From NCBI GenBank assembly GCA_977016875.1, contig CDRNST010000086.1, forward strand, positions 434,001 to 498,000: 64,000 nt of DNA, read 5' to 3'. Below are positions 7,724 to 51,500 of this stretch, piece by piece; position 1 is the first letter of the stretch, and every line of letters begins with the position of its first letter. The translations under genes and the position numbers were made by a program. The notes below the pieces were generated by a model. That model was given only the letters and a program-made list of their open reading frames with translations, was not told where the DNA came from and searched no databases. The DNA comes from Pavona decussata (taxonomy: Eukaryota).

Positions 7724-7870
7724 NNNNNNNNNNNNNNNNNNNNNNNNNNNNNNNNNNNNNNNNNNNNNNNNNNNNNNNNNNNNNNNNNNNNNNNNNNNNN
7801 NNNNNNNNNNNNNNNNNNNNNNNNNNNNNNNNNNNNNNNNNNNNNNNNNNNNNNNNNNNNNNNNNNNNNN
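7724..7870. other. Assembly gap (N run)
   Basis: Run of n. Confidence 1.
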
Positions 7871-21900: not shown

Positions 21901-24900
21901 GAACATGATGACTTCAAAGTAGGTTTGCTGTCTTGTACAAAATAAATGTGCAGTTCCAGAAAATATCCATACCCACCCACAGAAGGTCATTGGAAATTCT
22001 TCGGGGGAGGGGGCCTTAAAAAGCCAAAATTTGAGAAGCAAAGTATGAAGTTAAACTGGAATTTCCCTGGGGGTAGTGGGGTGCAAAACAAGAAACCTTC
22101 CATGGGGGGAGCATGGATATTTTCTGGAATTACACAATGCAACTCAGAACCTATCCTTGATGCCTGTCTTTTATAAAATCCCCCCCCCCCCTACCACCCC
22201 ACCACAGAAAGGATTGGGAAAACCTAGTCGTGGGGGGAACTCATACATGTAGGTCAAAAAGTTTAAAGAAATGTATGAAGCAAAGTGAAATTTCCAGAGG
22301 GATAGGGGGTGGGGTCCAGGTTTTTTTCTTGAACTGCACATTGGAAATGGAAAAGGTGGTTTCAAAAGGATAACTTTGCAATGGAAATGAACATGAAGGA
22401 GTAGGGATTCAAACCCATAAAGAACATTAATATTGTGGCTGGGGGTAGGCTGGTATGGGCATTTAAGATTTTGTGGAACAACATGCAATACAATGACTGA
22501 TTGTTCTTAGTATGTTTAGGCGCTTGCTTAAGACTGAATCATCTTGTAGTTTGGCTTCCCTGTCTAACTTCATTGCATAAACTAAGGCTAATCTACACGT
22601 TCCTGTTTATCAGCCCAATCACATGGGCCAATTTACATGTTACAATTTGTTGGCCAAATTATTTTTCTGTTGGTGAAGCACAAGGTGAAAATCAGCCTGA
22701 TTAATAAATTTGCAGCACTGTTACAGAGTTTTTTAAATCGGGATGTTTTTAGTACTATCACTCATTTTCATTGTCAAATTGGGTCAAATTGGCCTCAACA
22801 CAAACTTTCTTTTATTTTTGAAGATGATTGCTAAATATCTGGAAAATACTCATGCATTGACCCACAATCAATATCATATGGAGTTACTTGATGTGTTTGC
22901 AGTGGATCATGAAAAGAAATCCTTCACTGATGTTGGAAATAGGTAAGTAATGTGATGCTGTTGTGACTACAGATGTTGAGAAGCAGGACGCAGCTATGAC
23001 TATAGAGAACAACTAATTTCTGTAAAAACAAGAGAGGTTGTCAGTGGCTAAAAAAGTTACTTCCAAACTGAGGGCGATAACCGTGTCTCTCAGTACTTGG
23101 TGATGAAAGGTATGGTATGTGATTGAAAAGTCCAAGGTTTTCATAAATTTCTTTGGTTATTGACAACCTTTTTTATCTAAAGTGTTCCTACAATTACTGC
23201 ATTTTGCAGAACAGCGTCTTGTTTGTTAGTTTTCTAACATCACTTTTGTCTGCAAGTGGTATTATTTTACCCATTTATGTCTGAAAATAGGGCAAGTTGG
23301 GGGGGGAGGAGTTGTGTGTTTCTACTATGTACCCCCCGGATATGCTGGTCCATTCCTAACTTAACATAAAACAGTATGGAAGAAAGAACGGTGTCAGACA
23401 ACGAACAGACGATTGACAGAAGGAGAAAGAAATCTGTGAAGCTTCAGATGCGAGTATCACAAGTTCTGTTGTGGAGATTGGTTCTCTAGTTGGTTGTAGC
23501 CTGTGTATCTGGTGGTTTTTGTCCACGTGCGAATATAAAGTTTTGACATTACGCTGCAAGAAAATACCATTTCAAATCCTGGCCTTTTCCCCATTTCCCT
23601 CTGGGCTTTTCTGCTTGTTCGCCCAACTTTTGCCTTCGCCCAACATCTCGCCAGCTACACAGGCTAGCTAGTTGCTTTTCCCAAGCTCATCAGCTATATC
23701 CATTTACTTTTGCAATGTTTTTCTCTTGTAGGATGCTTTTATGGCATGGATCCCGTTTAACAAACTGGGTTGGCATTTTAAGTCAGGGATTGAGGATAGC
23801 TCCCCCAGAGGCCCCAGTGACAGGTTACATGGTAAGATCATGGTGAAGACAAAACAGTGTCATTGAGAATGACGGGTTAGGATGCAGTTTGTACAAATTG
23901 TACGTGATAGACAGTTAGTAGTAACTTTCTCAGATCTGTGTTTGCATGTGCTATGTGACTATTTGGTCGTTGGTGACCGGTACAACAGTCGTTGTCTTTT
24001 CATGTACCTGTAATTTCAGTGCAAGATTGTTGTGACAGATGTTTATAGTGTCCTGAAATTGTGTAAGCTTACATAAGACAAGTTTCGTTTGACCTGGAAA
24101 TGAATTAGGATGTTTCTTGGACAGATCTTTGCAATTCAGAAATTTCGGAAGGAAATCTGAAGATGTCTTTGGGGGTGTTAAGTAAATGCCGTTTTTAATT
24201 GAAAGAGTTAAAAAACTGCTTAGTAGATCAGTTTGGAAACTGTTCGTGAACCATTGGAACTCTCAACCTGGTTTACAAGGGAAAATCCTCGAAAGATGTT
24301 AACTGGATATTAAAGTTACTATAACTGGTGTATGGTTAATATTAATGTTTTTCCTTTATCGACTTGTAGTTTGGCAAAGGTATCTATTTCGCTGACATGT
24401 CATCTAAAAGTGCAAACTATTGCTTTGCTACAAGGACAAAGAATGTTGGCTTACTGCTACTTAGCGAGGTCAGTGAAATTTAGTTTTAGCGCATTTTTTT
24501 TTTAAATCTGTTTGCACCCCATGAACCATTCGTCCACCACTTGAAGGGTCGCTCCTCAAAACAGGTGAAACTCGAAATCGTGCACTTTGAGCATTACACG
24601 CCTTCTTCGAGCGATCTGTTATGGGAAATTGTGGAGAAGCAGAACATGACTTTCACTTAGTCTCTTGCTCGGAAGTTTCGATGCGTTCTTTACATTCTTC
24701 ACATGGAAAGCAAAGTGACTATTATTAAACCATGAATTAAATACAGCTGTACAATCAAGTGGCGTTTGAAATGAGGGGGAAAGGCATGCGAGTGACTTGC
24801 GCCTCATAATTTCATAATCTTGTTCTGAGAAAGTGGCGCGAGTTTGGCTAATCTAGTTTAGAAAAACAAAACCAAAGCAGACAAAGTTATTTTCAACTGA

Positions 24901-27900
24901 ACTGAGCACTTTTCTATTCCTTCGCAAAAAAAATGACGGCAAAGAAGAACAAACTTTGAGTGCGGAAAGAAAAGGTGTAATATGGAAATATTCTCTTTTT
25001 TTGCGCGCACTATTCTATACGACAGTTTTATAAATTTTTTTTTCACAATGACGCAGGCATACTCCGAGTTATTCTAACAAGAGTCGAAACTATGACTATC
25101 CTATTGATTGAATTACGGTCACCTCGCCACCAGGGAGTCTCGCCACCACGAAACCACCGTTCGATTGTGTTCGAGTGTCTAAACGTCTGGGGTGAGTTCG
25201 AATATGTTCGATTGCCGAACGCAATCCAAATCAATCGAACTATTGGAGTACGATTACCGAACGTCCGATTGGCTCCGATGGGCTGCTTACGCAAAAGCGA
25301 TTAAGCAAGCGGTCAGTGAGCACAACACAGCGAGTTTCGAAAATGCAGTCATCAAGTTCCCTAGACATCGCTTCGGTAAAGGTCGTAATATGCATACAGA
25401 CAAGCGAATCGATGAAAATTATAGTCCCCGAACAGCTATTTCTCCTCGACTTATCGAAGAAGACTTCGCTTGGTGGCGATTTGGCTGGTGGCGAGATGGT
25501 TTCGTGGTGGCGAGACTCCCTGGTGGCGAGGTGACCGGATACCTATTGATTACATGTTTGGAACCATTTGCAGTCTTATCACTTGGCTCCAAAGATAAAT
25601 TCCTGCACTCTGTTCATTGGCTGTCTTCATTTGTAGGTTTCCCTCGGAAAGAGTAATGAGCTTCTAGCGGCAGATTACACCGCTGACAAACTACCTACTG
25701 GCTGTCATAGTGTTAAAGGCATGGGAAAAGTGGCTCCTGATCCGAACGACACTTGTACAATGTATGTTGTGTTGGTTACCAGAATATTGTTAGATCAGAC
25801 TACCAGAAGTACTACTGCCTTCTCAGGAAACTCCAGCAAGAAATACGCTAGTTTGCGTTTTTCAGGCGAGCGGAAGCAAGCACGAGGCGAGCGCAGGGCG
25901 CGAGTCACGCGAGACTGGAGGGCACCTCTCCCGTAGCGCGACTCGCGCCCCGCGCTCGCCTTGTGCTTGCCTCCGCTCGCCTGAAAAACGCAAAAAATAA
26001 CGCCTGTTTTGCAGGCTAGAAATACGCCGCGTATCAGATTAACCTTAGGGGAGTGGTGGGGGAGTAGGAAGCCTGGCTAAGCAAGATTTCATTTATATTT
26101 ATTATGCACACAAGCCGACAGTATTACTGTCTTCAAATAAGTTGATTGTTGCATTGCAAATAGTGACAATATGCGTCGTCTGTAGCGCTAAACATTTACC
26201 AACCCGATCCTTAATCATTTCCGAACTGACGCCCAATACTTGGTCTTTCCTCACCCACTGAGATCATATAAACCATTCAGATCACTGGAATTAAGCTTAT
26301 TGGACTGTTTTATTTTTTGAAATTGAAGCGATCTATGAGCTGTACTACAAGTTTGTCAACTTACCCTAATAGTCACTAATCCAACGCCGCTTTACAAGTG
26401 GGTATCACGGCGTAAAATTGCGTGTCCTGTGATCGTTGTAAGACTTACAATATTTCATGTTTGATTGTTCAGGTCAGATGGGGTGGTTGTGCCTTGTGGT
26501 AAAAGCAAAGAGACTGGTGTGGTCAATCCACGAGGATATACGCTCAACTATAACGGTAATTTGTGTTATACTTATGTGAGACCTCACAACTGTAAACCTA
26601 GAAAAAGACTTGAATAGATAAAACATTAAGAATTGAACGTTAAAACTGTAAACCTTAAAACGGAAGTCCCAGTTGGAAGGAGCGCGAACGGTACTAAAAC
26701 ACCCATGGATAAGGGCCCCCTCCACCCCCTCGAATTGTAAGGAGGAGAAAATTATCTACATTATAAAATGATAAAGATAAAAACAAGGATAATGCGTTAG
26801 GTCCGGCGTCAGCTGCAATCATCGTAGACTGACCGGATACAGGTCATGGTAGAGTCTGAAAAGTGCCAGTTTTACTCAAAGTAAAGTAAAGTAATTAATC
26901 TTTATTGACTCACACTCTGATTTGGTACAAGAAGATTATAAGTTAATCCGAAAAAAAAAAAAGTGGCAAAGAGCGTAATTGTTAATTGAAGCCTAGAGGG
27001 TAAAGGAACCGCAAGGTTTTCGAGTTAGCCCCTAATAGTTGTTCAGAGTTAGTAATAATTGCTGGCGAGCGTTAGCGAGACAGCACACTATTCTTGTCAA
27101 TAGGGAGAAAAATCCAAAATTTTGTCGGATGTAAGACTCGAAGCTTGCGCAGTAGAGCATTATCCGGGATGGTTGAGACGACAATCATGCGCAAATCACA
27201 TGGCTGACATATAATCCGGGATACACACCTCACTTTGATGCACTTGAGAATCGCACGCTGTCAGACGCTTTCGGTTACGAGGTGCAGTTCACGTTGCCAT
27301 AAAATAGGTAGGTAGTTTTTCTATTTGCTGTCTTTATTTGCTTTCGTAATCATTCATCAAGGTCACGAACGGAAAGAGATCAATTTGTGTTTGGCTGCTT
27401 TCATAGATCCACCGCTTGAGAATTGAGATCACTTTCCACGGGATTCATCATTAATCCGTTCTTGACCTTGATGAATATTTTCACAAGCAAATGAAGACAT
27501 CTAGCCAATAAAAATATTTAGAAATACTTACCTACTTGTTTTATGGCAAAGTCAACTGCGCCTCGAAATCGTCTGTGCGTAAGATCGTGGTAAAATTCTC
27601 CCGTGGAACTGAAAGTGATCTCAATTCTCAAGCGCTGGATCTATGAAAGCAGCCAAACACAAATTGATCTCTTTCCGTTCGTGACCTTGATCTGCTTGAT
27701 GAATGATTACAGAAGCAAATAAAGACATAGCAAATAGAAAACATACCGTGGAGGCTAATAATTCCAGATCGGCGAACCACTCAACTGTGAAATCAAAGGA
27801 CTCGTTGTACTTTGACACGAGTTCTTCGCCCGTGGAGGCCAATAGTTCAAAATCTGTGAAGTCTGTGCCGGATAATTCGACCGTTGAGTCATGCTCTTTG

Positions 27901-29687
27901 TCCGTAAGTGTGTCCGGTCAGGCAAAAGAATTGAAAACGTGTCGATCGCTCGTCGAAGCGAACTATGCAACTGGGAAATCAGGTGATTGTTTCACTCTGA
28001 AATCAAACGACTCCTTGCACTTTCACACGAGTTCTTTGCTCGTATTCAAAATCTGTGCCGTTTGGGGCGGCTGATCCGTCTACTTCACCAACACCCCCAT
28101 CCCACAAAAAGGAAGCGTTTTCAACATTTCTTCCCCAATGTGGGTTATACAAATCACTAAACCTGTCATGACCCATTTTCAAAACCAATGCTTGCTGTGG
28201 TCATTTTTGCAACTCATCCAACTGAAACCTACTCTTCCTACCCTCAAAGTCGACCCCCTTTTCCAAACCCATTCACTGTTTAATTAAATCCCCACAACTT
28301 TATACCCCTTCGCCAGCACTCACTTNNNNNNNNNNNNNNNNNNNNNNNNNNNNNNNNNNNNNNNNNNNNNNNNNNNNNNNNNNNNNNNNNNNNNNNNNNN
28401 NNNNNNNNNNNNNNNNNNNNNNNNNNNNNNNNNNNNNNNNNNNNNNNNNNNNNNAAAACGGACTTACTAAATAATGCTAAAAGGAGGCTGTTGACATAGA
28501 GATTTGTTGTGTTGACAACAACGGGTGCGGCCGTGACTGACAAACTGAATGACTATACTGACATCGATATTGCCATTTCACACAGTGCATACCCTGGTCT
28601 ATATAGCGAAGGGCTACCGCCCACTGCTTTTCCCATTCTTTCAGATTGCTGTTTAATAGTAGCCTTGTTTTTATGACTTGTCGCAATTCATTCGTGATGA
28701 AAATAATTTCAATTTTCGCAGTGATTTTGGGGGTTTTTTATATTGAAAAATCTGAGTTCTTGATTTAACATATTTTTGGTTGTTTGGTTTTGCAGAATAC
28801 ATAGTCTACAACACAAATCAGGTAATCAACTGCTCTGCACTGACCATTAAGTGATATTTATTTTAGTGGAACAAAAGAAGTTTGGCACTGAAATAAAATT
28901 TTGCATAATAAGAAAAAATTGCACCACCGAAGTGCTTGAAACTGCATACAAAAAACAGTCTGAGGTTTCGGGGATAAACCCCCTCAACAATGTTTATGTT
29001 TAGCTGTTTCTGGCACCCAGGGTCTTGTTAGTGAATTTGAGTAACGCCTTCAAAAATGTCACTTCAAAAAGTAAATGAGCCTGCGAGAACAGACGCCTTT
29101 TCCAGCTTTTGTTTGAACTACTTCGCCGTTATTCCAAATTGTTCATTTTATGTGGCCATGTAGCCTAGCTATACAGGAACTGAATATGTGGATTGCATTG
29201 CCGCCATGTTGGAGTCAAAACAAAAGAAAATTTGCTCACATAGTTCGCATAAAAAAGGAAGTTAACCCCCAGAGAAGAAAAATCTTATTGTTCCTATCCA
29301 CCAGCGTGGCCGCCATGACGTCTCATGCAATCAACCTATTGGTGAATATTGAATTAACTGTCGTGTTCTCACCTTCTCCATAAAACTTTGAATTTGGTCT
29401 CTTAAGTTGTTGTTTTGCAAACAACCACAAGGGGATTAACCGAAATTTGTACCACATGGGTGGATCTCAATCACTCTTGGCCAAAGTATCAATTGAACAC
29501 CTCGTGACTGCCTTTAGCAGAGGTTAATTAAGATTGTGACTTTTTGCTTTCGAGCAAGCATAACTCTAATGAATCAATGTTAGAAGACTTTGGTTTTTGC
29601 CTTAAAGATTTGGTTAAATTTACTTGTTTTCATTTTCCCCAGGTGCGAATGAGGTACTTGGTGAAAGTCAAGTTTAACTTTAAATAA
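10762..29687 (+). CDS. PARP2: Poly(ADP-ribose) polymerase 2 with two N-terminal WWE domains (WWE-WWE-WGR-HD-ART), 730 aa
   Basis: 18 in-phase exons: 10762-10798, 13408-13746, 15636-15848, 16629-16742, 16961-17079, 18053-18149, 18579-18654, 19306-19568, 20494-20632, 20732-20795, 21784-21918, 22824-22942, 23732-23831, 24370-24468, 25637-25761, 26473-26555, 28796-28821, 29643-29687 (2193 nt). WGR: [24 protein letters not shown]...VWQRWGRVG. HD: KAPLGKL...[13 protein letters not shown]: WHGS, GIYFAD, GYTLNYNEYIVYN (PARP2-type). Exon 1 is the least certain. Confidence 0.92.
11088..12776. mobile_element. PIF/Harbinger-type non-autonomous element in PARP2 intron 1
   Basis: TIR TGCACTAGTCAATTGAAACCCCCAC at both ends; TAA duplicated at 11085-11087 and 12777-12779. 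Confidence 0.8.
11676..12470 (-). pseudogene. Frameshifted Penelope-like retroelement reverse transcriptase fragment
   Basis: Minus-strand pieces [28 protein letters not shown] (YxDD), [56 protein letters not shown]. Confidence 0.8.
13763..14158. mobile_element. Palindromic MITE
   Basis: TACAGTACTAAAGTG / CACTTTAGTACTCTA ends; long internal inverted arms (AAAGAGCATGATGAAAAATG / CATTTTTCATCATGCTCTTT). Confidence 0.7.
15305..15597 (+). mobile_element. tRNA-derived SINE (second family) with (TTTA)n tail
   Basis: Head GTAGCATGGTCAAGTGGTTAGGG...GGGTTCAAGTCC; non-tRNA body; TTTA tail. Confidence 0.7.
15853..15954 (+). repeat. Perfect 51-bp tandem duplication just inside PARP2 intron 3
   Basis: GTGAATATATTCAAGACATTTGTGTTTAGTTTGTATTGAAGGTGATCTCAA x2. 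Confidence 0.9.
16143..16334. mobile_element. About 190-bp MITE (TGTGCAGTTCCAGAAA TIR family)
   Basis: TIR TGTGCAGTTCCAGAAA / TTTCTGGAACTGCACA; relatives at about 645-850, 18208-18370, 21947-22136 and 22175-22340. Confidence 0.8.
17195..17373 (+). mobile_element. Probable relic of an RTE-clade LINE 5' UTR
   Basis: GGGCCACCCATGC...AGAGGCTAGACAAAGAGTGGTCCTCTGGTCCTCCAGATTGGGGGTTG...GGCTAGCAACC resembles RTE 5' regions (recognised from memory). Confidence 0.4.
18450..18540. mobile_element. 91-bp TAGCC...GGCTA hairpin element with 9-bp TSD
   Basis: TAGCCTGCGAGAGCAGACGC / GCGTCTGCTCTCACAGGCTA; AATTGTGAG on both flanks. Confidence 0.75.
18832..19113 (-). mobile_element. 5'-truncated SINE with expanded (TTA)n tail (AAT microsatellite 18832-18931)
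   Basis: Body matches 356-510; about 30 AAT units. Confidence 0.75.
21947..22136. mobile_element. MITE inserted only in PARP copy 2
   Basis: TIR pair; the paralogous site at 594-610 (TCTTGTACAAATGCAAC) is empty. Confidence 0.8.
25110..25542. mobile_element. 433-bp MULE-like non-autonomous element, 9-bp TSD
   Basis: TIR CGGTCACCTCGCCACCAGGGAGTCTCGCCACCACGAAACC; CTATTGATT at 25101-25109 and 25543-25551; single site in copy 1 at about 3978-3986. Confidence 0.85.
25849..26018. mobile_element. GC-rich hairpin element (TAG...GGCTA) with 9-bp TSD, copy 2 only
   Basis: Inverted arms TTTGCGTTTTTCAGGCGAGCGG / CCGCTCGCCTGAAAAACGCAAA; GAAATACGC on both flanks; empty site near 4275-4285. Confidence 0.8.
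26875..28550. mobile_element. Unclassified insertion(s) of about 1.7 kb in copy 2 intron 16, with internal inverted repeats and a gap
   Basis: Absent from the paralogous intron 4798-5839; 27316-27443 is inverted at 27598-27742. Confidence 0.5.
28326..28454. other. Assembly gap (N run)
   Basis: Run of n. Confidence 1.
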
Positions 29688-32953: not shown

Positions 32954-35900
32954 ATGGCTGATAAAAGACCCAAACGACAACGGAAAGTGCGTTCCGCAAC
33001 GGTAAGTTGTTTAAGTGAATGTTTTGGAGTATTTAGGTAGATTCGTGAGTGTTGTTTTGCTCCGCGCGGCAAACGTGCTCTCCCAGTGTAAAGCCAGTTT
33101 CAAAACAATGACTTGATAAAGCGAACTTGTAAAAGTTAAAAGTTAGGCCTTGCTCTGCTAATACAACAAGTTCAGAATGAACTTTGGCAAATGTTTGTCA
33201 ATTTTTCTTTAGAATCGATGAATACAATGTACTGAAAGAGGTCGTGTATATTTCGTATTCGAAGCGAAGTATCGATCGCTTGCAATTGTGTGGCATGAGT
33301 GCGAAATCAACAAGTGTCCCAGTAATCGTGAGTTTCAAGTAACCTAAATGTACTTTTCAATCACGGTTTTGAGTGACCTGCATATGTTCAAGAGAAGTTG
33401 CATTCATCAATTAAAAATGATAAAGATTATCAGGACCCTAACATATCAGAGTGTGCGCGAGCCATGGATAATGTAACTTACACCTTTCATTAAGCTTCAA
33501 GTTAAAGCTCTTGGTGTATTTTTAAGGTTTTTCCATCCTTAAGTTAGTCTTTAAGATCTCCTTATTACCCAGCTTTTATTTGTAAAGCACAGTAAGAACA
33601 GGATTGTAAACGTCGCCCAGTTAGAGACCGCTTTTAAGAATTACCGTCTTGTCTCAGGAGTAAAAAGAGACTGCGTGTTCAGATCAATTTATGTACGTTC
33701 TAAATCCAATCATCTCAAAATTAATGTTTGTAATTTAATTCGGAGCTCTTATTTCTGCTTTATGTTTAGCAGGTGAAGGCAAGTTTTAGTCATTAATTAG
33801 TGATTTGGGGATTTGCAAACTCAAGACTTAACTCAACATTTAGACCAAACTATGTTTCTTATTAAATCCAGTAACCAATTATTGGGTTGTTTCTGATTGA
33901 TTTGAGCACTCTTGCTTCTTACCATGGAGAGCAGCGTCCTACGCAGACATTCCTTTGGCTCGTCACGTCACGCACTTTGTGGGGAGAAGTGTGTTAACGT
34001 GACAAGCTAAACAACGTCTGTGTAGGAGGCTACATGGAGAGTGTCAAGAACTTCTTTCAGCAAAAAGGTAAAACAATGTACCTTATGTATACATCATCGT
34101 CATTTGGTTGGTGATACTACCTATGACTACATCTACAGACTCTGAAGTTAAAAACCTCAATAGTTTCCATTTGAATGGTTACACTCTGGGATGATTCTCA
34201 TCTCCAGACTAAATGCTTCAACTATGAGTAACCTTTCAATCAAAGCTAATGAGCACTTTTTTCTAATTCTAGCTCACTTTCTTGAAGTAGAGGATTAACT
34301 TGAATTTAGATCGAATATTTGTACTAGAGTAAATTATATCATGTATTCCATAGGAGTTTTTCGGGGGAGGTCTGTTACACAAAGAAGAAGTAGAATTGAG
34401 GAGGGCACTGCAGGCATCACTGAAAGTAGCTTATCAGAAGAAACAAGAAAAACTTGCTGAACCAGTTGTATCAGCTAGATCTGTTTGTACCAATACCAAA
34501 GCTTTCGAGAAGGAACAAGACAAGCCCGCTGAACCAGTTGCAACTAGATCTATTTGCACTGGCACCAATACGAGGTTTCGCATAAAGTCTTCTGTCAAGA
34601 AGAAACTGAAAAATGCTACAAAGCAGTGTGGGGATTCCCCTGAAAAGAAAAAGAACGGCATCGAGGAAAGAGAAAGTGGAACTTCCCAAGGAACCAGTCC
34701 GGTGTTAACCAAACCGTTGAAGAGAAAGGATGTTGCGGAAATTACTTTTACTTCTGTTAAAAAGAAAAAGAGAGAAAGTGAAAAGAGAGACAAGGAAGGA
34801 TTCCATAAGGGAAGTAATAAAGGATCAATAAAACTGAAAAAAGGAAAAGGTGTTGGAGAGATCACTGAGAGAAGAAAAGATGATGGAAAGAAAATGAAGA
34901 AGTTGTTCAGTGAATCTATTGTACGGAAAGAGCTAAAAAGTCCAGGTAAAACAAGCCAAGTTACACAATCTTCCAAGGGAAAAGAGTTGATGATTCTACC
35001 TAAAAGCAAAGCAGCTGTACACAAGTTACTCAACGACAGAAAGATAAAAGGTCATCAGAAAAGCAAAGTTGTTCAGAGTTTGACTGAGAAATTTAGTGCA
35101 ACTGTAAGAGATGGAAAACAACCAGCTACAGGTTTTATGAAGAAAGATAGTGAAGATCAAATGGATAGAGATTTTAGCAGTGCTAAAATCAAGAAGAAAA
35201 CTGGTTTGCAGAAGGATAAGTTTGAGAAATTAGAACAAAGTTCAGGTCCTTCCAGTGACTCTTCTTGTAAAACTAATAAGATTTGTGAACTGGGACAACA
35301 AGTGTCAAATTCACTGCAGGGAAAAGTCAGAAGAAGACTTAAACATAAGTTTAAAAACAGAAGGCTTGTGAGTCCACTAGGAGAGATCTACATACCAGCT
35401 AATATAGCAAAGACAGAAGACTTCCTGACTTTCTTGTGCTTAAGAGGTAAGTTGGTAAAAGGCAGGGAGTCTGTTCCTTGCAATATAACTATTTTCTGTC
35501 ATGAACATTACCGTTGTCAAACAGACACAACAAACAACTTTACTATAATAACAACAGAAAAACTGACTATCTTCTGCTGTGTGATGAAACCACTACCATT
35601 AGTAAATTCATTAGGACTCATCATCAAGAAAATGTATAAACAGTGTAGTTGGCTTTGTAGAAATCTTTCATCCAGGCAGAACTTCTTAAATGTGTTGTCC
35701 TCCCTATAAGGGAGGCTCCCCCCAAAAGGGGTACCTTTTCCAGGATGGAAGTATATAAAAGGGATTTCATGAGCCGAAGTATAGAAAAGGGTAGGGGGAA
35801 ATTGTCATTTAGGTATTTAAAAGGGCCTTTCAAAATATCTCGAACAGACCCAATGAAAAAAGATAGTGTTTCTACTGTAGGTATGTGAAAGGGTTACCAT

Positions 35901-36655
35901 TTCCTATGGAAGAAAAATGCTTCATCAAAGGGTTAGAGTTTGCACCTTGGGGCAGATCCTCCCCATCTTCCGATTGCATCGCTAGAAATGGTCATGATTA
36001 ACTGTCATCTGCCCTGCAACAGCATCAAATCTGCTGTTTTTGATTGTTTCACATGCCAAAATGAAAAAGCAAAACAATGTTGCACCGTAGGCTGTCTTAC
36101 AAAAATATATGTCAGCTTAAGTTTGGCCAATCATTACATGCAGGTGAATCAGTGTCAGGGACTGTCCCAAAGTTTGGGGAAGGGAGGGTCTTCCTGGTGT
36201 CCTTCCTTCTTTGGGGGTGGGGGGAGGGGTAGAGTGTAAAGATACCATCTGCTTGGATCCCCAAAAAATGCTGTGGATTCCAGTTACTTGGAGTACAAGA
36301 AGCATAACCCCTTAAGCACCTTCAAAGATGCCCAAAAGAAGTTAATGAAAACAATCACCAGCTTTATAGTTCACAGTAATGAGAGTACATCTCTAATTCA
36401 TTAGTCCTGCTAAAGTTATTGTTTAATTGTTTGTTGTCAGGTAATTCCAGTCTCCCAAGATGTTTTGATGTGTTCAACAACCCTGATCCATTTTTCACAC
36501 AGCCAGCTCATGATAGCGATGCAGCAGTGTCCTTTCCAGCTCTTCCAATGCAGTCATCAGTCACTTACTCTCCACCTTCATCAAGTGCACCTAGTGAGTC
36601 TTCAGCAGCTTCACCCATGTCTTCTGTTGATGGCTGGGTGATAAATGAAGACTAA
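32954..36655 (+). CDS. Truncated JARID2 paralog ('mini-JARID2'): UIM, Lys-rich region and PRC2-binding motif; no JmjN/ARID/JmjC; 451 aa
   Basis: Exons 32954-33001 (MADKRPKRQRKVRSAT), 34354-35446 (EFFGGGLLHKEEVELRRALQASLK...KTEDFLTFLCLR), 36441-36655 (GNSSLPRCFDVFNNP...INED*). GT-AG, in phase, 1356 nt, no internal stops. Confidence 0.8.
33932..34032. mobile_element. Short hairpin element ending GGCTA, 9-bp TSD
   Basis: TCCTACGCAGAC / GTCTGTGTAGGA arms; CATGGAGAG on both flanks. Confidence 0.7.
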
Positions 36656-37121
36656 AAATGTCAGGCCAAGTAATCAAGCAAGTCGTGAAGTGTTTTATAC
36701 AAGCTCTAGTGCAGTCAAAATTCTCATCTGTGACCATTAAAAGATGGTTGGGTAGGGCTATGTTCCAATTTACCTGCAAAATACTTGCACTTATCTAAAT
36801 TTGCAGTACGTGGCGGCGCCAGAAAAAATTGCATACTATTCACCACACATGTAGGGATTTCAAAGTGGCATATGCATCCAAAAGTTACCTTTTTCTTTCG
36901 AGTAGGCCCATTATAAACTCTCGTGGATAGGTGGTGCAGATAGTAGGTGCAGTGTGATCAGAAGGTCAATCTGTGTAAATTTTCTCATGGATCCAAACTT
37001 TGGGTCCGGTACAACGTGAACACGCCCTAGAAGAAGTGGTCATTTACGTTGGGTCTAAATATATTAACAAGATGAAACTTGGTGTTGTAGAAAGTGGCCA
37101 TGTAAGAAAGGTGGACCTTAA

Positions 37122-37625
37122 CCCTATCCAGACCAGGCTTTTTTGTGTTTTGGGGGTGGGGTAGGGGGATTCTGCCCCCCTCCATAACTTTGCAACTATT
37201 GAGGCTTGGAGGAGAGATAGTATGTCCAAAGATGTTTCCTTTGAGGTTCGTAACAAGAAGTGATGTCATCTAACGTGGTAATCAAATCATGATTACTAAA
37301 GGCAGCCATCTTGGATTTCCCCAAAACTTTAGGAAGCGCCAAAATTAAGTGAAAAGTAATCAGAACCAATAAAGGAACACTAATAAAATTGTGAGATAAA
37401 AACACAAAAGTTACAGTAAGAATAGTAATTTTTCTTATAAAAAAATGGATTTTCCATTTTCTGAAAAAACCACTTGTCCAAAATTGGTTGTCATGATAAC
37501 ATGAAAGTCAATGAACACTAACCAACCACATCAAATTTTTCCCAGATAAATTTCTGACAAAGTTGTAAAGTTATTCAGGTTCAAAGTCACCATGGGCAGA
37601 ATCCCCTCTGTCCTCCAGTCTAGGG
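37122..37625. mobile_element. piggyBac-like MITE relic
   Basis: TTAA|CCCTA...TAGGG|TTAA ends. Confidence 0.55.
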
Positions 37626-38858: not shown

Positions 38859-40368
38859 TCAGAAAATGACAATGGAGTCATGAAAAAGTTTCCGTACTTT
38901 TGCTTTCAGTTCTGGTATACCTGTTCCATACTTTGCAGATACCGGTATGATGGGTAAAGGCAATGCCTCCGCAATTCTTTGAATTTCATTTTCAGATTCA
39001 ACCATGTCTATCTTATTTGCGACAATTGCGCCTGGTCTTTGTGAGAGCTGCTCCTTGTAAAGCTCTAACTCTTCCCGTAAACATGCAAACGTTGCTAATG
39101 AGTCTTTCTGAGAAACGTCCAAAACGTAGAGCAGGCAGCGACACCTCTCAATGTGCCGCAGAAAAGCATGTCCTAGCCCCTTGTTCAGATGAGCTCCACT
39201 TATTAACCCAGGAATATCTGCCACTAGAAAAGAAAGGATTTACATGTAAGTTGAAAATGTCTTAAAACGGACAAGTTGCAGAGATACAAAAAAGCTAAGC
39301 CTAGGGTATTAACATGCTCTTGAGCTTAGTGACTCACCACTGCTATTACTATTAATATTAAACAGGAAATTCTGGTATCAAAGGGGCCAGGCATGGCCAT
39401 TCTCACCTTAAGTTGTCAACCAATTATCAGAGCTTAAACAACTGACAAACAACAACTCTTAGTGATCAAATTGGCTTAGTTTTGGAATAAACCCTGTTAA
39501 CAGAATTAGAAATCAATGTCTTATATTACTGTGGTGATATTATGAAATTTGAGGCATATTTTTCAGAGGATGCCCAAGTCAACAACGTGCCACGACTGAA
39601 CGATGTCTAAATTTGAATTTTATGCTCAGAAAGGTGTGAGAGGAAGGAGTGGCTTGCCCTTTTTTAGTGGAACTTCTTGTTTAAAAGCATCAATCCAAAC
39701 AGTACTGAACTTGAGGTAGTTTTAAATTTTGCCCAGAATTTGCCCGAGGCATAAAAACAATGGAGCTGAAGGTTACCAGGGTCCAGTGAAAAATAGAGCT
39801 GAGAAGAGGTGTGGGCCTACTGGTACTCTTTACTCCTAATGGGTTGGGTAGGGGCTGCAGCCCTTATATCTCCATCTCCTTGAATCTGCCCAGGCCCAAT
39901 AATTGTTCATTAATTACGTACTGGCATGCACTTTCTTTGTTTGCTGGCATGGAGGGCAACCAAGAAACCTCTACCCAAAGGAAAAAAGGTTGTGGTTGAA
40001 TTTTATCAGACTATAAGTATACATTTATGTTTCAGCCTTACACCCTGTTGGAGGTGAACTGGACGAGTGAGTGATAATTTTATGTCATCAAAAAATTACG
40101 TGTACTGTACCTTTTGTCTGACCAATCTAAGTGAAGTGTGAGTCAAATCAACATCAAACTGGGTTATGTTATGTACCTGCAATCTGTGAGTAATCTTCAA
40201 ACTCCAATATGCCAACAAAAGGATTTATTGTGGTAAAAGGATAAGCAGCCACTGCTGGCTTGGCCCTGGAAATTGCTCTCAAAAGAGTAGACTTGCCAGC
40301 ATTAGGGAAACCAACCTGAAAAGTACAATCAGGCCTGGCTCTTAAAAATAAACACTATCATTTAACAA

Positions 40369-40411
<43 letters not shown>

Positions 40412-43400
40412 ATTCTAGTCAAAGGTTTGTTAACCATCCCTGCTCCCCTAGTTCTAACTAATTAGTTAGAACTAGGGGAGCAGGGATGGCGCAGTGGTGA
40501 GAGCATTTGTCTCCCACCAACGTGGCCCGGGTTCAATTCCCGGTGTTGACGCCATGTGTGGGGTGAGTTTATTGTTGGTTCTCATCCTTTCTCCGTGAGG
40601 TTTTTCTCTGGGTACTCAAGGTTTCCTCCCTCCACAAAAACCAACATTCCCAAATTCCAAGTAGACCAGGAAACAGTGGATGAAAGATCTACTCTGTGGA
40701 AGCCACTGAAATTCCTATTTATTTATTAGAGTCAATTATGAGAGTTCATGACAGTATGTAGTCAAACCACAGCAAATGCCTGAATTATTGGCAGGTCAAA
40801 AAAACCTTTTTTCTCGTTTCATTTTACAATGTACAGTAGTTATTCTGTCCATCTCCATTTCTCAAACTAACCAAGCCAATATCAGCAATGGTCTTCAGTT
40901 CCAACTCCACAACTTTCTCCTCTCCAGGGGTCCCCTCAGTGTGCATTTTGGGAGCTTGATCCAGTGCTGTCTTGAAGTATGCATTTCCAAGTCCACCCAG
41001 CCCTCCCCTGGCAGCTACAAATGTTTGTCTCTCAGCTGTCAAGTCTGCTAAAACTTCACCATTTGCCTTAACCACTGTTCCGAGAGGAACCTGGTAAATA
41101 CAATCATGTTATTGTAAGAAAACAACAGTACTAATCAATAGTCTAATTACCGGAGAATTTATAATTTGCAACAAAATGTCCCAAGTTATACATACTTATT
41201 GTAAAAACACGAAAGGACCATAGGCCTATCAATAATACCTAAACCTCTGGTCGTAGGAATGAAAATGTTGTGGCCTTATCATCAATACCTGAACCTAGTT
41301 GTCAACATTTCAGACTGAGAGTTTAGCTGACAAGAAGCAAAATGAAAGACCTTTGAAAACTGCAAAACTTCACACAAACCCAGCTTGTAATTTTGCAATT
41401 TATTGATAAGTTTAGCCAATCCATAGAAGCTGTCTGATTTTCAGTCTGTTATTTCAAAACTCTGAGCTTATTGCATTCAACGTAGGAAGAACGCCTTCCA
41501 AATACAGATTGGAGTCAAGATTGCATGTATGGGACAACGTTTATATTTGCCGGAAAGAATGGATGGATCTTGGGATGTGTATCTGGCATCCCCCGCAGAT
41601 TTTTTTTTGCAGGGGCGGATGACATCATCATCAACTTGGCAAAGGAGGGAGAGTCTGGGATCGAGATCATCGAACGCACTCCCTAATCTTTGATTATTAA
41701 TAGTAGGTATTACCTGGTATTTAATACATATGTTAACAACAAAAGTAATTTTATTGAAGCAAGACCACTGTAGTTGGGTAGGCAACTTCAGCAGTTGCAA
41801 AAAGAAAACCTGAAAAATTCAGGTTTGAATGGGATTCAAATCCATGGCCACTGGAATTCCTGTGCTGTGGTCAACCAACTAAGCTATCAAGCCAACTGGG
41901 AACTAGTCATTTTGTGAGTTGACGGTTCATAATACGCCCATGGTCGCCTGTGAACATGGATGTATTTCCGGCTGAGAGAAGCAACAGCCGGAAATATGTC
42001 TATGTTCACAGGCTACACCATTGGAGGTCATCAATAACAATAGTTGAATATTATTTTCATTTTACGTCAAATTCAAAAACAAGTAAGACTACTGATATAA
42101 CTAGTCTAAAAGGGATTCACCTCAAACATGCGATCTGAGCCATTCTTGCCCTTACAATCCTCGCCTTTACCAGCTCCACCATTCTCTGCTTTGATGTGCT
42201 TAGGAAGGTGAGCAAACTCCTTTACAGAGTAATCTGCAACCAGAACTACACTTCCTCCATGGCCACCATCACCACCATCAGGGCCAGCTTTTGGCTGGAA
42301 TCTACATTGTAACAAATGTATGAACATCATAAACTGAAGTTAACATTACAGTCATATGGTTCTTCCTTGGATTACTGAGGCGGGAATTGGTGGGCAAGAC
42401 AAAACAGTAATTAAAATTTAATTATTTTTCAGAAATTATGTGAATCATGGGATTACCATTTTAATCATAAAGAGTTTAAGTTACACATGCAATTGCCTCA
42501 TTTATCAGTTGAAGAATTTTTGGCATGACTAGCATGAGTGCCTTTTTTTGCCTTGAAATAACAAGAAATAGCTTATTACTTTTCTTGAAAATGCAAGCGA
42601 CTCACACAAAAGAGATACCAATACTCGACTGTTTCCTTTCTGCATGAGACAGATAGAGCCCTGCATGCAAGCCTGAGCCGGAGACCGAATGAACCATTTG
42701 TGTTGTGAACAAAAGAAATCAGTCCAGTGTCGGTATCGCACAATTTTGTGACATAATTTTTACATAACACCACCATTTTCAATAAAGGCATTGTTGGACT
42801 GCCATTGTAGAATGTACTTGTGCTTTATAATTTCTCATAGATCTTCTTCTGTCAAAGTTACTGGTTAAAATCCCCAACAGAATTTTTGTGCATTGGACAA
42901 CGAAAACTTCTGATTCCCTTACAGAAACCAAACCCAAGACCTTGCATAGCTGCACAGGGAGACCCATGGCAAGCTAGGATGCATGTATATAAAATTTTTG
43001 TAAATAATTTTAAGCATAACTGTATGTACTAATTAGTACTTATTAAATTATTATTTCTAAAATATTTAAAAACTGGTTTAAAAAACTCTTAAAGCAAACA
43101 TAAATTATTGTAAAGACACTGAAATTAAAGATGTCTCAACCTAAGAGCTTGTCTCAACCCAGTTCATCCTGAATCCTGGTTTCAATTTAGTATTTTTCAT
43201 AAGGTACTTACTTTTTCCTCCTGAAGTGAACACACCCATTGCCACCATCTCCTGCCTTGAGAACTACTTTCTTCCAGTCTATAAACTGTCTCTCCTATTC
43301 CAAAATATAAAAGAAAAATATTTACAGTCAAATGAGAAATGAAACAGTGGCAATTAACTGCATGAGAAATTAATTACTATTAACAACTTTTTATATCACC

Positions 43401-45584: not shown

Positions 45585-48500
45585 ATGGCGGCGGAGCGCC
45601 CAAGGCGAAGGATAACACAGCCGTGCTTGGTATGTAAATGGGTATTGCTTCAACGCGCGATTTCGGCAACTTCAGTGAATTCAAAGGCTTACGTGTTAGT
45701 TTCTATCGGAAAGATGGGCGTTATGTTTCTCTCCTTGCTGTTAATGTTGTGGTTCCATAATGTGGCTTGCTTGGTGTGTCGCATTTCCGAGTGAAGCAGC
45801 TGTTCTTTTACGCCATTTCAACACCAGAATCGTGAGGTCTCCATTTAACAGCGCGAATAATAGCGTTTCGTTTTCAAAACACACTCGATTGGTTTTATTT
45901 TCACCATATCGAAATCTTAAACAGGTTTTCGGGTTTAGCTGTCTGCTTCTTGGGCTAAAGTACAAGAGGAACAATTTCCTGCGTCTTTGTGATATTTAGG
46001 TCAAAGAGGAAAAGCACCATGCATTCAATTTGAAATTTCTATTAAAAGTTAATTAGCTAGTAATACCCTGTCGGACTCGAAAAGAAAACATAAAAATCCT
46101 CATTTTGACAATTCTCTGGATGTTTAGCCGCTTTATGAAATGTTATAAGCCCAGTTGAAAACTTTGAGTTGTTTTTATAATCACTTACTTGAATATTTAG
46201 TTTTTATCTCATTTGTGTCAAACAATAAACAGCTGCCGTCGGTAATGATTATCAAGAATCGAGCAAAGAGAGGCTGTCTCAATACCTTTTGTTTGGTGAT
46301 AAAATACTGCTGAATGTACTAATGTTAATCACTTAAGCCTAAATACTTCTGTGTTTATTGTCTTCGTTAAAAAAAGACTACAAATGGATAAAAGCTTAAT
46401 CCAACAGGGGTTAAAAAATTTTAACTTTTAAAGATACAAGACCATAATGTTACAGTTGACTAACAAAGCGGAAGGTTCCATCAGCAGTACTCGTAAATGT
46501 TTGCCGACAAGACTGTTTGCAGTATTCGGATCTTCTGTATTTGCCTTCATGAAGGCAACTTTTTATCAAAAGGTCCCTTTAAAAATAGGGCCTTTCATAT
46601 TTAAAGCTCACAGCTAACTTGTAGATTTTTGCAACAGTATCCAGAATTTATTGATCACTATGGTTTCATTAATTAAGGAGCTATTTAGTGACCCTTGAAG
46701 TTTTAGAAGTGTGTACCTTTTAGAAGAGCTTCTAAAGTACTTGTATCTCAGCATGAAGTCAAGTTTACCCTTCGAGCCTGAGATGATATATAAAAAGCAA
46801 CGCTAAAGGTTGTGCAGGTGTATAATATATATTAATAAAAGTTATCAATTCTGTATCTAGAAAGAAGGAGTGTTCCATTCCCTGTCCTTAAAAGGGAAGT
46901 ATCACTTGACCTTTTATCATGAAAATGGTGTGCAACATCTTCACTTACTAGTTACAAAATAATTCTAGAACATCAAGAAAAAGAAATCAACTGAATTCTT
47001 GAAGGGAACAACTTCATGGCCTGCCCTTAGCTAGTGTATTTTGGGAACGAAAATGGGAGAACTTGAAAGCAGTTAGCCTAACTGTTTTCAAGTTGCATTC
47101 CATTCTAACCCAGTCATCTGTGGCCAGAGACACTTACAAATAGATAAATAAGCAATACCTTTAGGTTTCTGTTGATAAAAAAAAAAAACATTTTGGAGTT
47201 TTTGACATAACACCAAATTCCCCTGATACTTCCCCTTTAAACCTTTATATAATAGATACAGTGATTTAGATCAAACAAACCACCTGTTGAGATTCACTTT
47301 CGATCCATTATTGGTGAAAAGCAATATAAATTATGTATCAGGGGTGCTCCCCTATGTAAGGTATTCTTGGTTTGCAAATGATGTCACCAAAACTGTGAGA
47401 CCTTCAAAATTAAGTTTTATCTTCATCAGGGGTAACTTGATTACTGTACCTACATCTTTTACAAGTTTTCAGCTCGATAGCATCCTACATGTTTGTACCT
47501 TTTAAAATAGAACAAGTCATGTAGAATTTTTCAATGTTTTCACCTTATGTGGCATCAAGATGGCAGCCATGACAGAGCTGTTTCGTGTGTAAAAAATGAT
47601 GCTCCTCTGGTAATTTCTAGCATTCTTAACAATTAAAGTATTTGGAATTTAGGTATTTATGTGAAAATTCACAAGTTCAAAAGAGAATTAGTAACTGCTT
47701 CTGTAGCAAAAAGTGAATTCCAGATGTTTTCATTAATTTCTGGCCACCATGTTAGATCTGGTGTCCCTCGGAGGGAAACCAATGTGGTGTCTCGATACTG
47801 AGCTCTATAAATTTGTGTGGAACATTTTGACAAGCATGGGATGCTGCACCGACCTGAGACTTAAAACAATATTGTTCATTTGTTTTTCTTCTATGACATT
47901 TCAACTTCTTTCACTTCGTGAAAAACAGCAAATATTAGGTATGTGCGGCCCCAAAGGGTGTAGATTTTAAGCTGTTGTCTGAAATAGGGTATAGATTTAA
48001 ACCCTTTTTGTCTGAAAGTTAGAAAACTAGTATGTAAACTATCTGAAAATGGGGATGAATTTGAGAGGCCAGGTCTGACAAAGGGTCAGGAGTACATCTC
48101 TGTGGATTGATTCATTTATGTATGACAAAATGGTGTAACATGTTGTTGAAGAAAATATCCATCCCTTTCAGTGGAAGGTTCTTTCTATTTGGATACCTTT
48201 ACCCCTCTGAAAGTTCCAGTGTAAAGTTTAGTTTTAAGTTGGCTTACTACAGTTTTTGTACCACTATCAAGCTTAACATGCACGCTCTCCAAGACAAGAA
48301 AGCACCACGTGTACAAAGTGACGAAGCCAGCTGATGAAATCCCGCGAACACACAAGCTGTTATTTTGTGGGAAAATGCCGGAACACGAAGGCAGCATTCA
48401 CTCACCAGTTGGAGCGCATGCACGATGGAACCCGGGTTTTCCCTGAAAGAAGCATGTGCAATGGCTTTCTCACCGTAGGTCGCGATGACCATTTTTTCTC

Positions 48501-51500
48501 GCTTTCTTTCTCCAAATCTTGCTGTACAACCTACGTTCAAATTTTTGCTGTTCACAGAAAACACTAAAACAGAAACGTGAACATTTTTTAAAGAAAATTT
48601 ATCAGAAATTTTTTTAAGAATTTTCAAATAAGGCAAAATTCCACAATGTCGTAATTTGCCAAATTTCTACCTTACAGAATTATGTGTGCTTCCCTGTAAA
48701 TACTTATTTTTGGCCATTTTCCAAATCCTGAAATTTTGAAGTGGGGTCATACAAGTAGATTTAGAGCCAGACAACTCTAAAAGGTGTAGCTCCCATGCCC
48801 CCGCTAAAGACTCGTTCTACTGTATTGGACTCAAAATTATCTCCATTGTATTTATCTTTGTAGAAAAAATCTTCAAGAAAACTCTGACCTGTTAGCATTA
48901 TCCTAAGTTTGATTCAAGGCCTGTTTTCGCCCCAGAAAACTGTAGTAAGCCACCTTAAAAATGTTGGCTTTTGTAGATCTCAATGTGGAAAGATGGGTGG
49001 GTATGGGTATTTTGTGGAACAACACTTGACAAATTAGGTGAAATAAATATCTCACCGAAAAAGTTATCAGCCCACCCAATGTTAGTTAAACCTCATGAAA
49101 TTCCAGGCACCATTTAGACAGTCACTTGAAGTGGGAGTAGTGGTGACTGATTGCACATTCTTCTGTTCTTCTTGCACTGTCAACCGGTAACAAACTGTAC
49201 AGGTCTACACTTTTCTTTGATTTCGTCTCCCTCCATTTTTCACAATTCAGTGTTGTTTAGAAACTTATGTACGGTGCAAAACACTTTGCATTCCTTGCCC
49301 TGTCCAACACTGTATGGGGAAAAGGGGCTATTTACTATTAATTATTAATACAGAGTAACTCCAGAAAAGGTAGAGGATCTAAGGGGGTAATTGTGATGGT
49401 CATTTTTTTTTAAACCACATAGAAATTACATGAACATGACAGTGTATGAAATTGGCTGTTTTTCAGGGAGTTAAATAATCAATTCTTACACAAAAACCAA
49501 GATCTTTGGTTCACATACATGTGCATGTGTCCTGCCAAGTCTTTTCTCTCTTTTCTTTTTCTTTAATAATTATTATCACATACAGGTGTACACTGTCATT
49601 TGTGACCAGCCATAATTAGAGAGCATTTGGTCATTAAAAGCTCTTCGATCTACGGTATTAATAAATGTTTGATGCCAAGCAACATAACTGAAACCATCGG
49701 TGTGACGATATATATTGATATTTTAATTAATAATGTTCTCTTTTCTGATATATAGGAATACAATGGAGGCCTTCTGCATAAGGAGGAAGTTATGTTGCGT
49801 AAGGCTATGTATGCCTCATTGCATGAGTCCAAGAGACCTCTTACAAAGCTTCCCAATGAACTTTCAACAACAAGCAGTGAAACATTAAGCAGAAATGGCT
49901 CTCACATTTTCACTGTTGTTGATTCCAAGGAAGAAGAGTTAATTAGCAAGCAACATGTCTCTCCCGATGAGCTTGACAACAATAATGGTGGCAGTGAATC
50001 TGGAAAAAACATTGACCCAAATCATCCCTCCTTGCAGGCTTACCCTGAAATGAAAAAGAAGTTGAAAATATCAAAGGAGCCAAGCAAACTTCTTAATTAT
50101 GTCATCAAGAAAAAGAAGGAGAAAAGAACTAATTCAAGAGCTTTGATCAGAACTCTGTCACCAACTAAACTTTCAGGGAATGCTGAAACAGGTTTCCCTG
50201 GTTCTTTGAATGGGAAATCGAAAAAGAAAAAAAGGAGGCAAAGAGGAGCGCTTGCTGTATTTGTTGCCATGAATAAGTCAGCAGGTGGAAAAATATTGAG
50301 TAAAAATCATTTCTCTAAGCCAGAGAAAGAACAACTCTTAAAATCTAAAAGGAAGAGAAGGAGGAAGAGGAAAGAATTTGAGAATGAAATTTGCAGTCAG
50401 GGTGATGGTGCTGGTGTTGGAAGTGAGGAATCACCACCCAAGAAATCCAAGAAAGAAGACAAAAAGTAAGTTCTGTTAGCTGTAAATTTATTACAGATAC
50501 TTTTGAATAGGACTTATTCTATTTAAACAAACTTGACTGTGTAAATTTTGTTGAGGGGCTTAATTAGCTGACAGTTTGCCCCAAAGAGCTACATGTATGT
50601 TGTGGTTCAATTTTATCCTTGGTTTAAATTTTATTTTTCTTTGTTTTAAACCCATTATCATTACGTTTTCATAACCAAGAACAATAGAAAGATAAAATTT
50701 AAACCAAGGATAAATTTCAACCACAACATACTTACTTGTAAGTTTTTAGAACATCAAATTGGCAAGGGAATCTATCAGACAGTGCATTACCCCTGAGACG
50801 GAAGCACTCTTACTACTATCTTTATTGTTGAACACTACCAAATCTTCTTCAGATTCAGAACAGATCTATATATGTATGAATATAATTGGAATGAAATTTT
50901 GACCTGTTAGGCAAACAGTTGAAATAAAAAAGGCATTATACCTTTATCACTCAGCGGCCATGTTGAGTCTTGGGGGAATAAAAAGCTTTGTTTTCGCATG
51001 GCAAGCATCGACTAGCTAAACAGGAATTCAGTGCGAGGCTTGCCATGCAAAAACAAACTAAGCTTTTTATTCTCCTGAGACTCAACATGGCAGTCGTGTG
51101 ATAAAGGTCTATTGGAAAGAAATAACTTAGTACATTATAATGAAAGCACCCTCCTTGTAGTGAATTAAAAATAAAACAAATGCATGACATGGATTTATTA
51201 CTACTTTTGCACCGTATGATCAGTTAAAATCAATAAGACTAGAAGAGAGTTAAGTGATGAACTATAAGAGCAATAACTTGAACTACATTTGTTATTAAAA
51301 TAAAAAAACATTTCACCAGCAAGTGGTAAATGAAAGGTGTTCCTTCAGGAGCATTTTAATCAAATTAAATGAATCCCAACTTGTCAGACCTATTGGAACT
51401 GTTATTACTTGTTATTGTTACAGGTATCATTAAGTAAACTGTAGCTTGGGAAAAACTATGTATTACTACATGTAATGGCTGCTGTGTAAATTATATCCCT

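Follow-up and report, generated by a model that had tools for sequence, protein, structure and literature searches.

What does a JARID2 paralogue do when it keeps the motif that docks onto Polycomb repressive complex 2 (PRC2), and the motif by which JARID2 activates that complex cannot be recognised in it? The question is raised by a window of 64,000 nucleotides from the coral Pavona decussata (contig CDRNST010000086.1, positions 434,001 to 498,000), in which a short gene that we call mini-JARID2 lies upstream of the canonical JARID2 gene. Lysine 116 (K116) of JARID2 makes it the textbook cofactor mimicking histone H3 trimethylated at lysine 27 (H3K27me3), and mouse knock-ins, in which loss of the mimic leads to Polycomb gain of function, have just reopened the question of its role in vivo. 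We find that mini-JARID2 is a spliced, expressed, stand-alone paralogue of JARID2 of about 452 aa, with a perfect docking motif and no recognisable K116 mimic, and that it probably binds PRC2 without mimicking H3K27me3. Searches of papers did not find a description of such a coral gene.

The gene has three exons on the forward strand. Exon 1, with its coding part at 32955-33002, reads MADKRPKRQRKVRSAT, ends in a GT donor, and is preceded by a 5′ untranslated region (UTR) reaching to at least 32882. Exon 2 (34354-35446) is a single exon that corresponds to the span of three canonical JARID2 exons, and it contains the ubiquitin-interacting motif (UIM, 34372-34422), a K-rich linker, a basic block and the docking motif; the last part of it, 35329-35446 in frame 1, translates as RRLKHKFKNRRLVSPLGEIYIPANIAKTEDFLTFLCLR and is followed by the donor AG/GTAAGT. 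Exon 3 (36441-36655) reads G-NSSLPRCFDVFNNP ... SVDGWVINED, with the stop codon at 36653-36655 and a 3′ UTR to at least 37269. The mini and the canonical gene share the phase 0 intron behind exon 1 and the phase 1 intron behind the docking motif; the two introns that flank the canonical K116 exon are absent from the mini copy. The N-terminus given by exon 1 is the same in spliced orthologues, as is the C-terminus given by exon 3 in nine of them. We searched the exons one at a time, and took the spliced database orthologues as full-length models.

Expression is seen in RNA contigs from runs with the same organism label. The joint 33000 to 34353 (GT..AG) is present in three runs from three studies (X1, X2 and X3), and the joint 35444 to 36439 (GT..AG) in X2 and X3. 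One contig, record 19 of X3, spans 35022-35444 and 36439-37269, and because it runs from exon 3 on to 37269 the message has its own stop and a 3′ UTR of about 600 nt. No joint from the mini transcript to the canonical gene is listed among the RNA contigs over the window. RNA depth falls on the exons and on an intronic repeat, with little signal in intron 1, and that in one run only. At the repeat, 35683-35996 in intron 2, the RNA-contig depth climbs as high as about 125 and loose ends are numerous; the element is dispersed and abundantly transcribed and does not belong to the gene.

The docking motif AKTEDFLTFLCLR is identical in the mini and canonical copies, and at the TR (SUZ12-docking) motif KTEDFLTFLCLRG there is 12/12 identity with the human JARID2 chains in PRC2 structures (9c8u_E, 6c23, 6wkr and 8vnv), so that the sequence-only reading, an earlier reading of this DNA from its letters, was right to call the motif perfect. 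The motif is part of an extended docking block at 35371-35445, SPLGEIYIPANIAKTEDFLTFLCLR, with TEDFLTFLCLR at 35413-35445, which is invariant from P341 to R364 in 49/49 mini sequences, save positions 351-352. When the mini and canonical profiles are compared by hhalign, only the YIPAN..TEDFLTFLCLRG block aligns (E 4.6e-17). The TR motif is known to bind the ZnB/Zn platform of SUZ12, and the UIM to bind ubiquitin on H2AK119ub nucleosomes (PMC9255955). From this conservation we infer that mini-JARID2 docks on PRC2 through SUZ12.

The UIM is kept as well, with 15/21 residues identical to the canonical copy, and the whole-exon profiles align with the canonical UIM exon at the UIM only (hhalign E 8.3e-9). 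The Pfam UIM match is weak in the mini family; there is a precomputed UIM match for P0005, and no Pfam domains were found in three full-length mini orthologues. P0005, a coral protein from an ENA contig, carries the UIM segment (LLHKEEV...) in three tandem copies, and has Cys in place of a His that is discussed below. The parts of the JARID2 N-terminus that are kept are the RPKR start, the UIM, the extended invariant TR motif and the LPxxFxxF segment after TR. The protein ends before JmjN, ARID and JmjC, and none of JmjN, ARID, JmjC and C5HC2 is found in it, the transcripts ending about 600 nt after the stop codon. Of the two genes, only the downstream canonical one gave a JmjN match.

How old is this gene, and is it under selection? 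Exon 2 has 48 homologues at 35-90% identity, and there are nine spliced full-length orthologues of 390-454 aa, eight of them on transcript-like contigs of 1.3-2.5 kb and one an annotated genome model, which share the same start and the same C-terminal S-x-D-G-W tail. The named orthologues come from Acropora palmata, A. millepora, A. muricata, Montipora capricornis, M. foliosa, Porites evermanni, P. harrisoni, Stylophora pistillata, Oculina patagonica and Desmophyllum pertusum. Since these genera represent both major stony-coral clades, mini-JARID2 was present before the two, Complexa and Robusta, split. A search of the genome of the window's own species finds the single copy and no further ones. 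The order mini-JARID2, Obg on the minus strand, JARID2 is found in five loci (L001 and L003-L006), with GTP1_OBG and MMR_HSR1 matches in the same position in each, and in three further species the mini and canonical genes are on the same contig. The ratio of nonsynonymous to synonymous substitution rates (dN/dS), calculated against three relatives, is 0.06-0.07 for residues 323-364, the last 42 of exon 2, at a dS of 0.6-1.2, and it is 0.4-0.7 for the linker.

A far more divergent mini-JARID2 stands in the same place beside Obg at L005:167-790 (ENA assembly ERZ25071792). It has a 208-aa exon 2, in which the UIM, an H-K pair and the docking motif are kept. An intermediate state was sought among relatives of this copy in the protein collection, and the search returned only the copy itself. 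As for the names under which these proteins are deposited, two RefSeq orthologues, P0158 and P0159 (from Montipora capricornis and M. foliosa), are annotated as 'titin homolog', and those of Acropora, Stylophora and Porites are called 'uncharacterized', 'unnamed' or 'hypothetical'. These database names are either uninformative or wrong.

What, then, stands in the place of the K116 motif? The canonical peptide at 52048-52086 is AQRKFARTHPPSP, and the copy of the motif within its 63-nt exon reads MVHAQRKFARTHPPSPS. The mini peptide at 35338-35376 is LKHKFKNRRLVSP, in agreement with the sequence-only reading, which gave both peptides with the right letters and saw that the residue before the candidate Lys (position -1) is His in the mini copy. 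The mini peptide belongs to a conserved basic block at 35320-35370, GKVRRRLKHKFKNRRLV, with the His at 35344-46, the Lys at 35347-49 and the Phe at 35350-52, and the block lies within the C-terminal stretch of low dN/dS. In the canonical motif, a seven-residue stretch has been reported to be identical in every species examined (Sanulli et al. 2015, PMC4352895). All 20 of the canonical proteins aligned from other animals have QRKF without variation, and the 5 coral K116 exons (that of the window and those of four other coral loci) all read AQRKFA.

The mini family has a pattern of its own: three basic residues, L/I, K, H, K, F/L, K, D/N, R, K/R, L, V. We counted residues over 49 sequences, 24 of them distinct. 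Position -2 is K in 46/49. At -1, 45 sequences have H, 3 have Q and a single one has C, and neither R nor K ever occurs there; the Q belongs to Stylophora and to the 291-member P0046 cluster. The His therefore does not vary freely among orthologues. The candidate Lys itself is present in 45 of the 49, with R in place of it in 3 and V in 1, and it has been lost in four lineages, which have R, V or Q. The P0046 cluster and P0037 have R, the P0008 cluster has V on genomic as well as transcript contigs, and one Porites member has Q; the cluster members read confirm the R (14/14). The residue at +1 is Phe in 15 sequences and Leu in 34; the divergent L005 copy has Thr and reads R-H-K-T-P-G-K-R-Q-V at the site. 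Position +2 is K in 49/49, and K334, R336, L338 and V339 are invariant in the family. QRKF or RKF at the site occurs in none of the 49 sequences (0/49), nor in any of the cluster members read. Further along, the S-P at +8/+9 that had been aligned between the two copies holds for the Pro, which is invariant (49/49), and fails for the Ser (S 15, N 22, C 12). The spacing from the Lys to the docking motif had been put slightly short, at 21 residues; from the Lys to the Thr of TEDFL there are 22 residues in the mini protein and 30 in the canonical gene of the window species, and canonical proteins in general have 29 to 94 residues between the K116 motif and the docking motif.

These counts can be compared with what PRC2 and EED are known to accept. 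The preferred substrate of PRC2 is [ACVP]-[AVL]-[RK]-K-[FYH]-[AVCTS] (PMC9255955; PMC6771386), and EED requires a trimethylated lysine next to an aromatic residue (PMC8319299; PMC4352895); a peptide carrying F117A fails to bind EED and does not stimulate PRC2 (PMC4352895). The window sequence L-K-H-K-F-K fits the PRC2 preference at +1 only, and the family consensus fits it nowhere. That PRC2 prefers Arg at -1, as the sequence-only reading stressed, is correct as a preference but not as a rule: PALI1 K1241, with K at -1, and K1219, with Q, are both methylated in cells and their trimethylated peptides bind EED, and K1241 is also methylated by PRC2 in vitro (PMC8319299). To stress the His is thus too narrow, since K or Q in that place does not prevent the methylation of PALI1. 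Stronger arguments than the His are the Leu at +1 in most species and the R, V or Q that replaces the Lys in four lineages. With no QRKFA in the family, no R or K at -1, mostly Leu at +1 and a Lys that varies, conserved use of the site as a PRC2 substrate or EED ligand is unlikely, and the basic patch most likely is not a substrate or ligand of the K116 type.

Can the basic patch nevertheless be traced back to the K116 motif? A forced global hhalign alignment sets the mini Lys under K116, the His under R115 and the F/L under F117, but the part of this alignment that precedes the docking block is at chance level (E 0.85). Without forcing, hhalign of the K116-exon profile against the whole mini alignment finds nothing, and in an ungapped scan with a position-specific scoring matrix neither candidate site, this one or the K246 island described below, is consistently top-ranked. 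Profile Smith-Waterman comparison with column-shuffle nulls gives 11.1-13.0 for the K246 island and 9.4-10.8 for the H-K-F site, both inside the null. The basic block scores 20.0 against the basic clusters of canonical exon 2, where the null is 18.6 +/- 2.4. A PDB search with the 20-aa K116 exon gave no match, and one with the K246 island gave chance matches. A MAFFT alignment equated the mini K-L/F-K-D/N-R-x-L-V with the start of the canonical TR exon (IKLKEDRNLL). We rejected this homology because that start is not conserved in four other corals, where it reads MRYQVEGNLL, MRYQEEANML, LKMQEENDYLL and MRYREEANLL.

The statement that the two sites are homologous, made in the sequence-only reading, thus does not hold beyond position, since similarity outside the docking block is at chance. 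And because nothing rises above chance outside the UIM and the docking block, a motif that was 'rewritten' is indistinguishable from one that was 'deleted and replaced'. A positional homology of LKHKFK and AQRKFA is plausible, although we lean slightly toward doubting it.

Several other explanations have to be weighed against the reading that mini-JARID2 has no mimic. One is that LKHKFK is a direct descendant of AQRKFA and a weak PRC2 substrate, making the protein an attenuated activator that displaces full-length JARID2 and dampens PRC2. The collinear order of UIM, linker, basic run, K-F/L, Pro at +9 and docking motif speaks for descent, as do the residue pairing of the forced alignment, the conservation of His and of Lys, each in 45/49, and the lack of any orthologue with R or K at -1. 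Yet the similarity outside the docking block is at chance, the Lys is gone in four lineages and +1 is Leu in most, and loss of K116 function in mice raises Polycomb activity, so that a 'dampener' does not follow from a weakened motif. We regard this explanation as unlikely. It is also possible, if doubtful, that the K116 exon was lost outright, in one deletion that fused the UIM and docking exons and removed two introns along with the motif; the basic patch would then go back to one of the basic clusters in the former UIM exon, or have arisen de novo. Mini exon 2 spans three canonical exons and its flanking introns keep their position and phase, and the patch scores higher against the basic clusters of canonical exon 2 (20.0 and 18.9) than the site does against the K116 exon (9.4-10.8). 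All patch scores are however inside the shuffle null, low-complexity K/R runs align trivially with each other, and an exon-fusing deletion accounts for the structure no better than a cDNA copy by which two adjacent introns were lost.

A different proposal relocates the mimic. The linker has a conserved island at 35059-35100, KSKVVQSLTEKFSA, with K246-F247 at 35089-35094. No other Lys-aromatic pair is conserved throughout the family, in Complexa and Robusta alike; K-F stands at this place in 36/37 aligned orthologues, and in 12/37 at the basic-block site. The island could represent a short linear motif not recognised before, perhaps a methyl-lysine site. If K246-F247, in the context KVVQSL-x-x-KF-S/G-A, were the EED ligand of mini-JARID2, that would agree with its being the sole such pair, in the sole strongly conserved island of the linker, and with its being the top local match of the all-animal K116 profile. 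That score (11.1) nevertheless equals the null mean, the residue at -1 is E, A, V, L or K and not the preferred R or K, and the island is absent from the divergent L005 copy, and we find the proposal improbable. That the mini copy should be a decaying partial duplicate, or mere alternative 5′ exons of JARID2, is barely conceivable. It is a partial tandem duplicate 13 kb upstream of the canonical gene on the same strand, and its linker evolves fast (dN/dS up to 0.74 against the closest relative). But more than 45 species-level clusters show an intact frame, the transcript ends in a stop and a 3′ UTR of its own with no listed joint to canonical exons, and the canonical gene starts from a separate exon 1 at 45585, with the minus-strand Obg gene in between. 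We reject the pseudogene and alternative-5′-exon readings on conservation, transcript joints, dN/dS and the separate canonical exon 1.

There are also observations that weigh against the absence of a mimic, which we still consider the probable state of mini-JARID2. With synonymous divergence at saturation, most lineages still have the His at -1 and the Lys, and a conserved H-K could mean a specific function at that place, including methylation by PRC2 or another enzyme. The Phe at +1 is kept in the window species, in Acropora and in Montipora, and K or Q at -1 in PALI1 is compatible with methylation and EED binding (PMC8319299). The forced profile alignment does set the mini Lys under K116, and both families have an invariant Pro at +9. 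The mimic could also come from another site, K246-F247. Finally, identity between the RNA contigs and the window is 94-99%, and the RNA label of the contigs is a guess, the spliced joints being what shows that they are RNA.

If the protein works as its motifs suggest, mini-JARID2 would occupy the JARID2 site on SUZ12, its UIM could read histone H2A monoubiquitinated at lysine 119 (H2AK119ub1), and it would supply no lysine mimicking H3K27me3. It would thereby form, or compete for, a PRC2.2-like complex in which the EED cage is left free. The basic patch is probably kept for another role, such as a nuclear localisation signal or a contact with nucleic acid or the nucleosome. Mice with K116-defective or allosteric-defective JARID2 show Polycomb gain of function (bioRxiv 10.1101/2025.03.13.642955), and mini-JARID2 may shift PRC2 activity in either direction.

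As a more tentative proposal, mini-JARID2 may be a natural separation-of-function JARID2, kept since before the Complexa-Robusta split as a small PRC2.2 adaptor that combines H2AK119ub1 reading with SUZ12 docking and leaves the EED cage empty. Were this so, the ratio of mini to full-length JARID2 would tune the spread of the H3K27me3 read-write loop. In a bolder variant, the K246-F247 island may be a relocated methyl-lysine mimic with rules of its own. A conserved coral paralogue that keeps the motifs for docking and ubiquitin reading and appears to have dropped the mimic amounts to an evolutionary experiment on the K116 question, and a protein with UIM and TR without K116 is a ready-made reagent for PRC2 biochemistry. 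The identification also corrects the 'uncharacterized' and 'titin homolog' names at NCBI.

The rest of the window gives the setting of the gene. The Obg-family GTPase exons found by an open reading frame scan at 38862-41108 on the minus strand lie between both JARID2 genes and serve as a synteny marker. Downstream of Obg, the canonical JARID2 gene has its own start in exon 1 (45585-45629, forward strand), MAAERPRRRITQPCL, identified by a pattern scan and its GT donor, which matches the N-termini of two canonical proteins (P0053 and P0056). On the same strand follow the UIM exon (49756-50465) and the K116 exon (52029-52091), LGRMVHAQRKFARTHPPSPS, with the Lys codon at 52057-52059. The K116 exon is 63 nt long and runs from phase 2 to phase 2, so that skipping it would keep the frame and give a full-length JARID2 lacking K116. 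The docking (TR) exon (54312-54400, forward strand), IKLKEDRNLLSCSLTRAKTEDFLTFLCLR, ends in RAKTEDFLTFLCLR, and the part of it before TRAK differs among corals. The exon after TR (55149-55483, forward strand) reads NPVLPKELEMFNNP ... and is homologous to mini exon 3. Two sets of exons for the PARP catalytic domain, with one stretch of 18 residues in both, lie upstream of the mini gene at 2347-4302 and 23547-25933, about 21 kb apart, and the region thus holds two partial tandem gene duplicates adjoining each other, the PARP exons and mini-JARID2. Runs of N occupy 7724-7870 and 28326-28454.

It remains to compare mini-JARID2 with known systems. The closest is K116 of JARID2 itself (human QAQRKFAQ), which is methylated by PRC2 and then, as K116me3, binds the aromatic cage of EED. 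The mini site belongs to the same family and has the same relative place, between a basic run and the SUZ12-docking motif, with Lys-Phe in the window species and Pro at +9. It differs in that the canonical heptad is identical in all canonical JARID2 proteins (PMC4352895), whereas four of the five flanking positions differ in mini-JARID2, where -1 is H, Q or C, +1 is mostly Leu, the Lys is not invariant and the similarity is not above chance. The K1241 and K1219 sites of PALI1, a vertebrate PRC2.1 subunit and convergent JARID2 mimic, are methyl-lysine sites without Arg at -1, and they indicate that His at -1 does not by itself exclude function. In PALI1, however, K1241 and F1242 are fully conserved across vertebrates, unlike the coral site, where most species have no aromatic residue and some have no Lys.

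Like the N-terminal module of full-length JARID2 in PRC2.2, which consists of UIM, K116 and TR, mini-JARID2 keeps the RPKR start, the UIM and TR, and it shares with its tandem neighbour the position and phase of the introns behind exon 1 and behind TR. Unlike the full-length protein, it is without the K116 motif, the RNA/nucleosome-binding region, JmjN, ARID, JmjC and the zinc finger, and it has 390-456 aa against an estimated length of well over 1500 aa for canonical coral JARID2. Delta-N JARID2 is a mammalian short form without the PRC2-interacting N-terminus, arising as an isoform or a processing product. Mini-JARID2 resembles it as a natural partial JARID2 that separates the functions of the protein, and is at the same time its mirror image: Delta-N retains the C-terminal domains without binding PRC2, whereas mini-JARID2 is the N-terminus only, encoded by a separate gene and predicted to bind PRC2.

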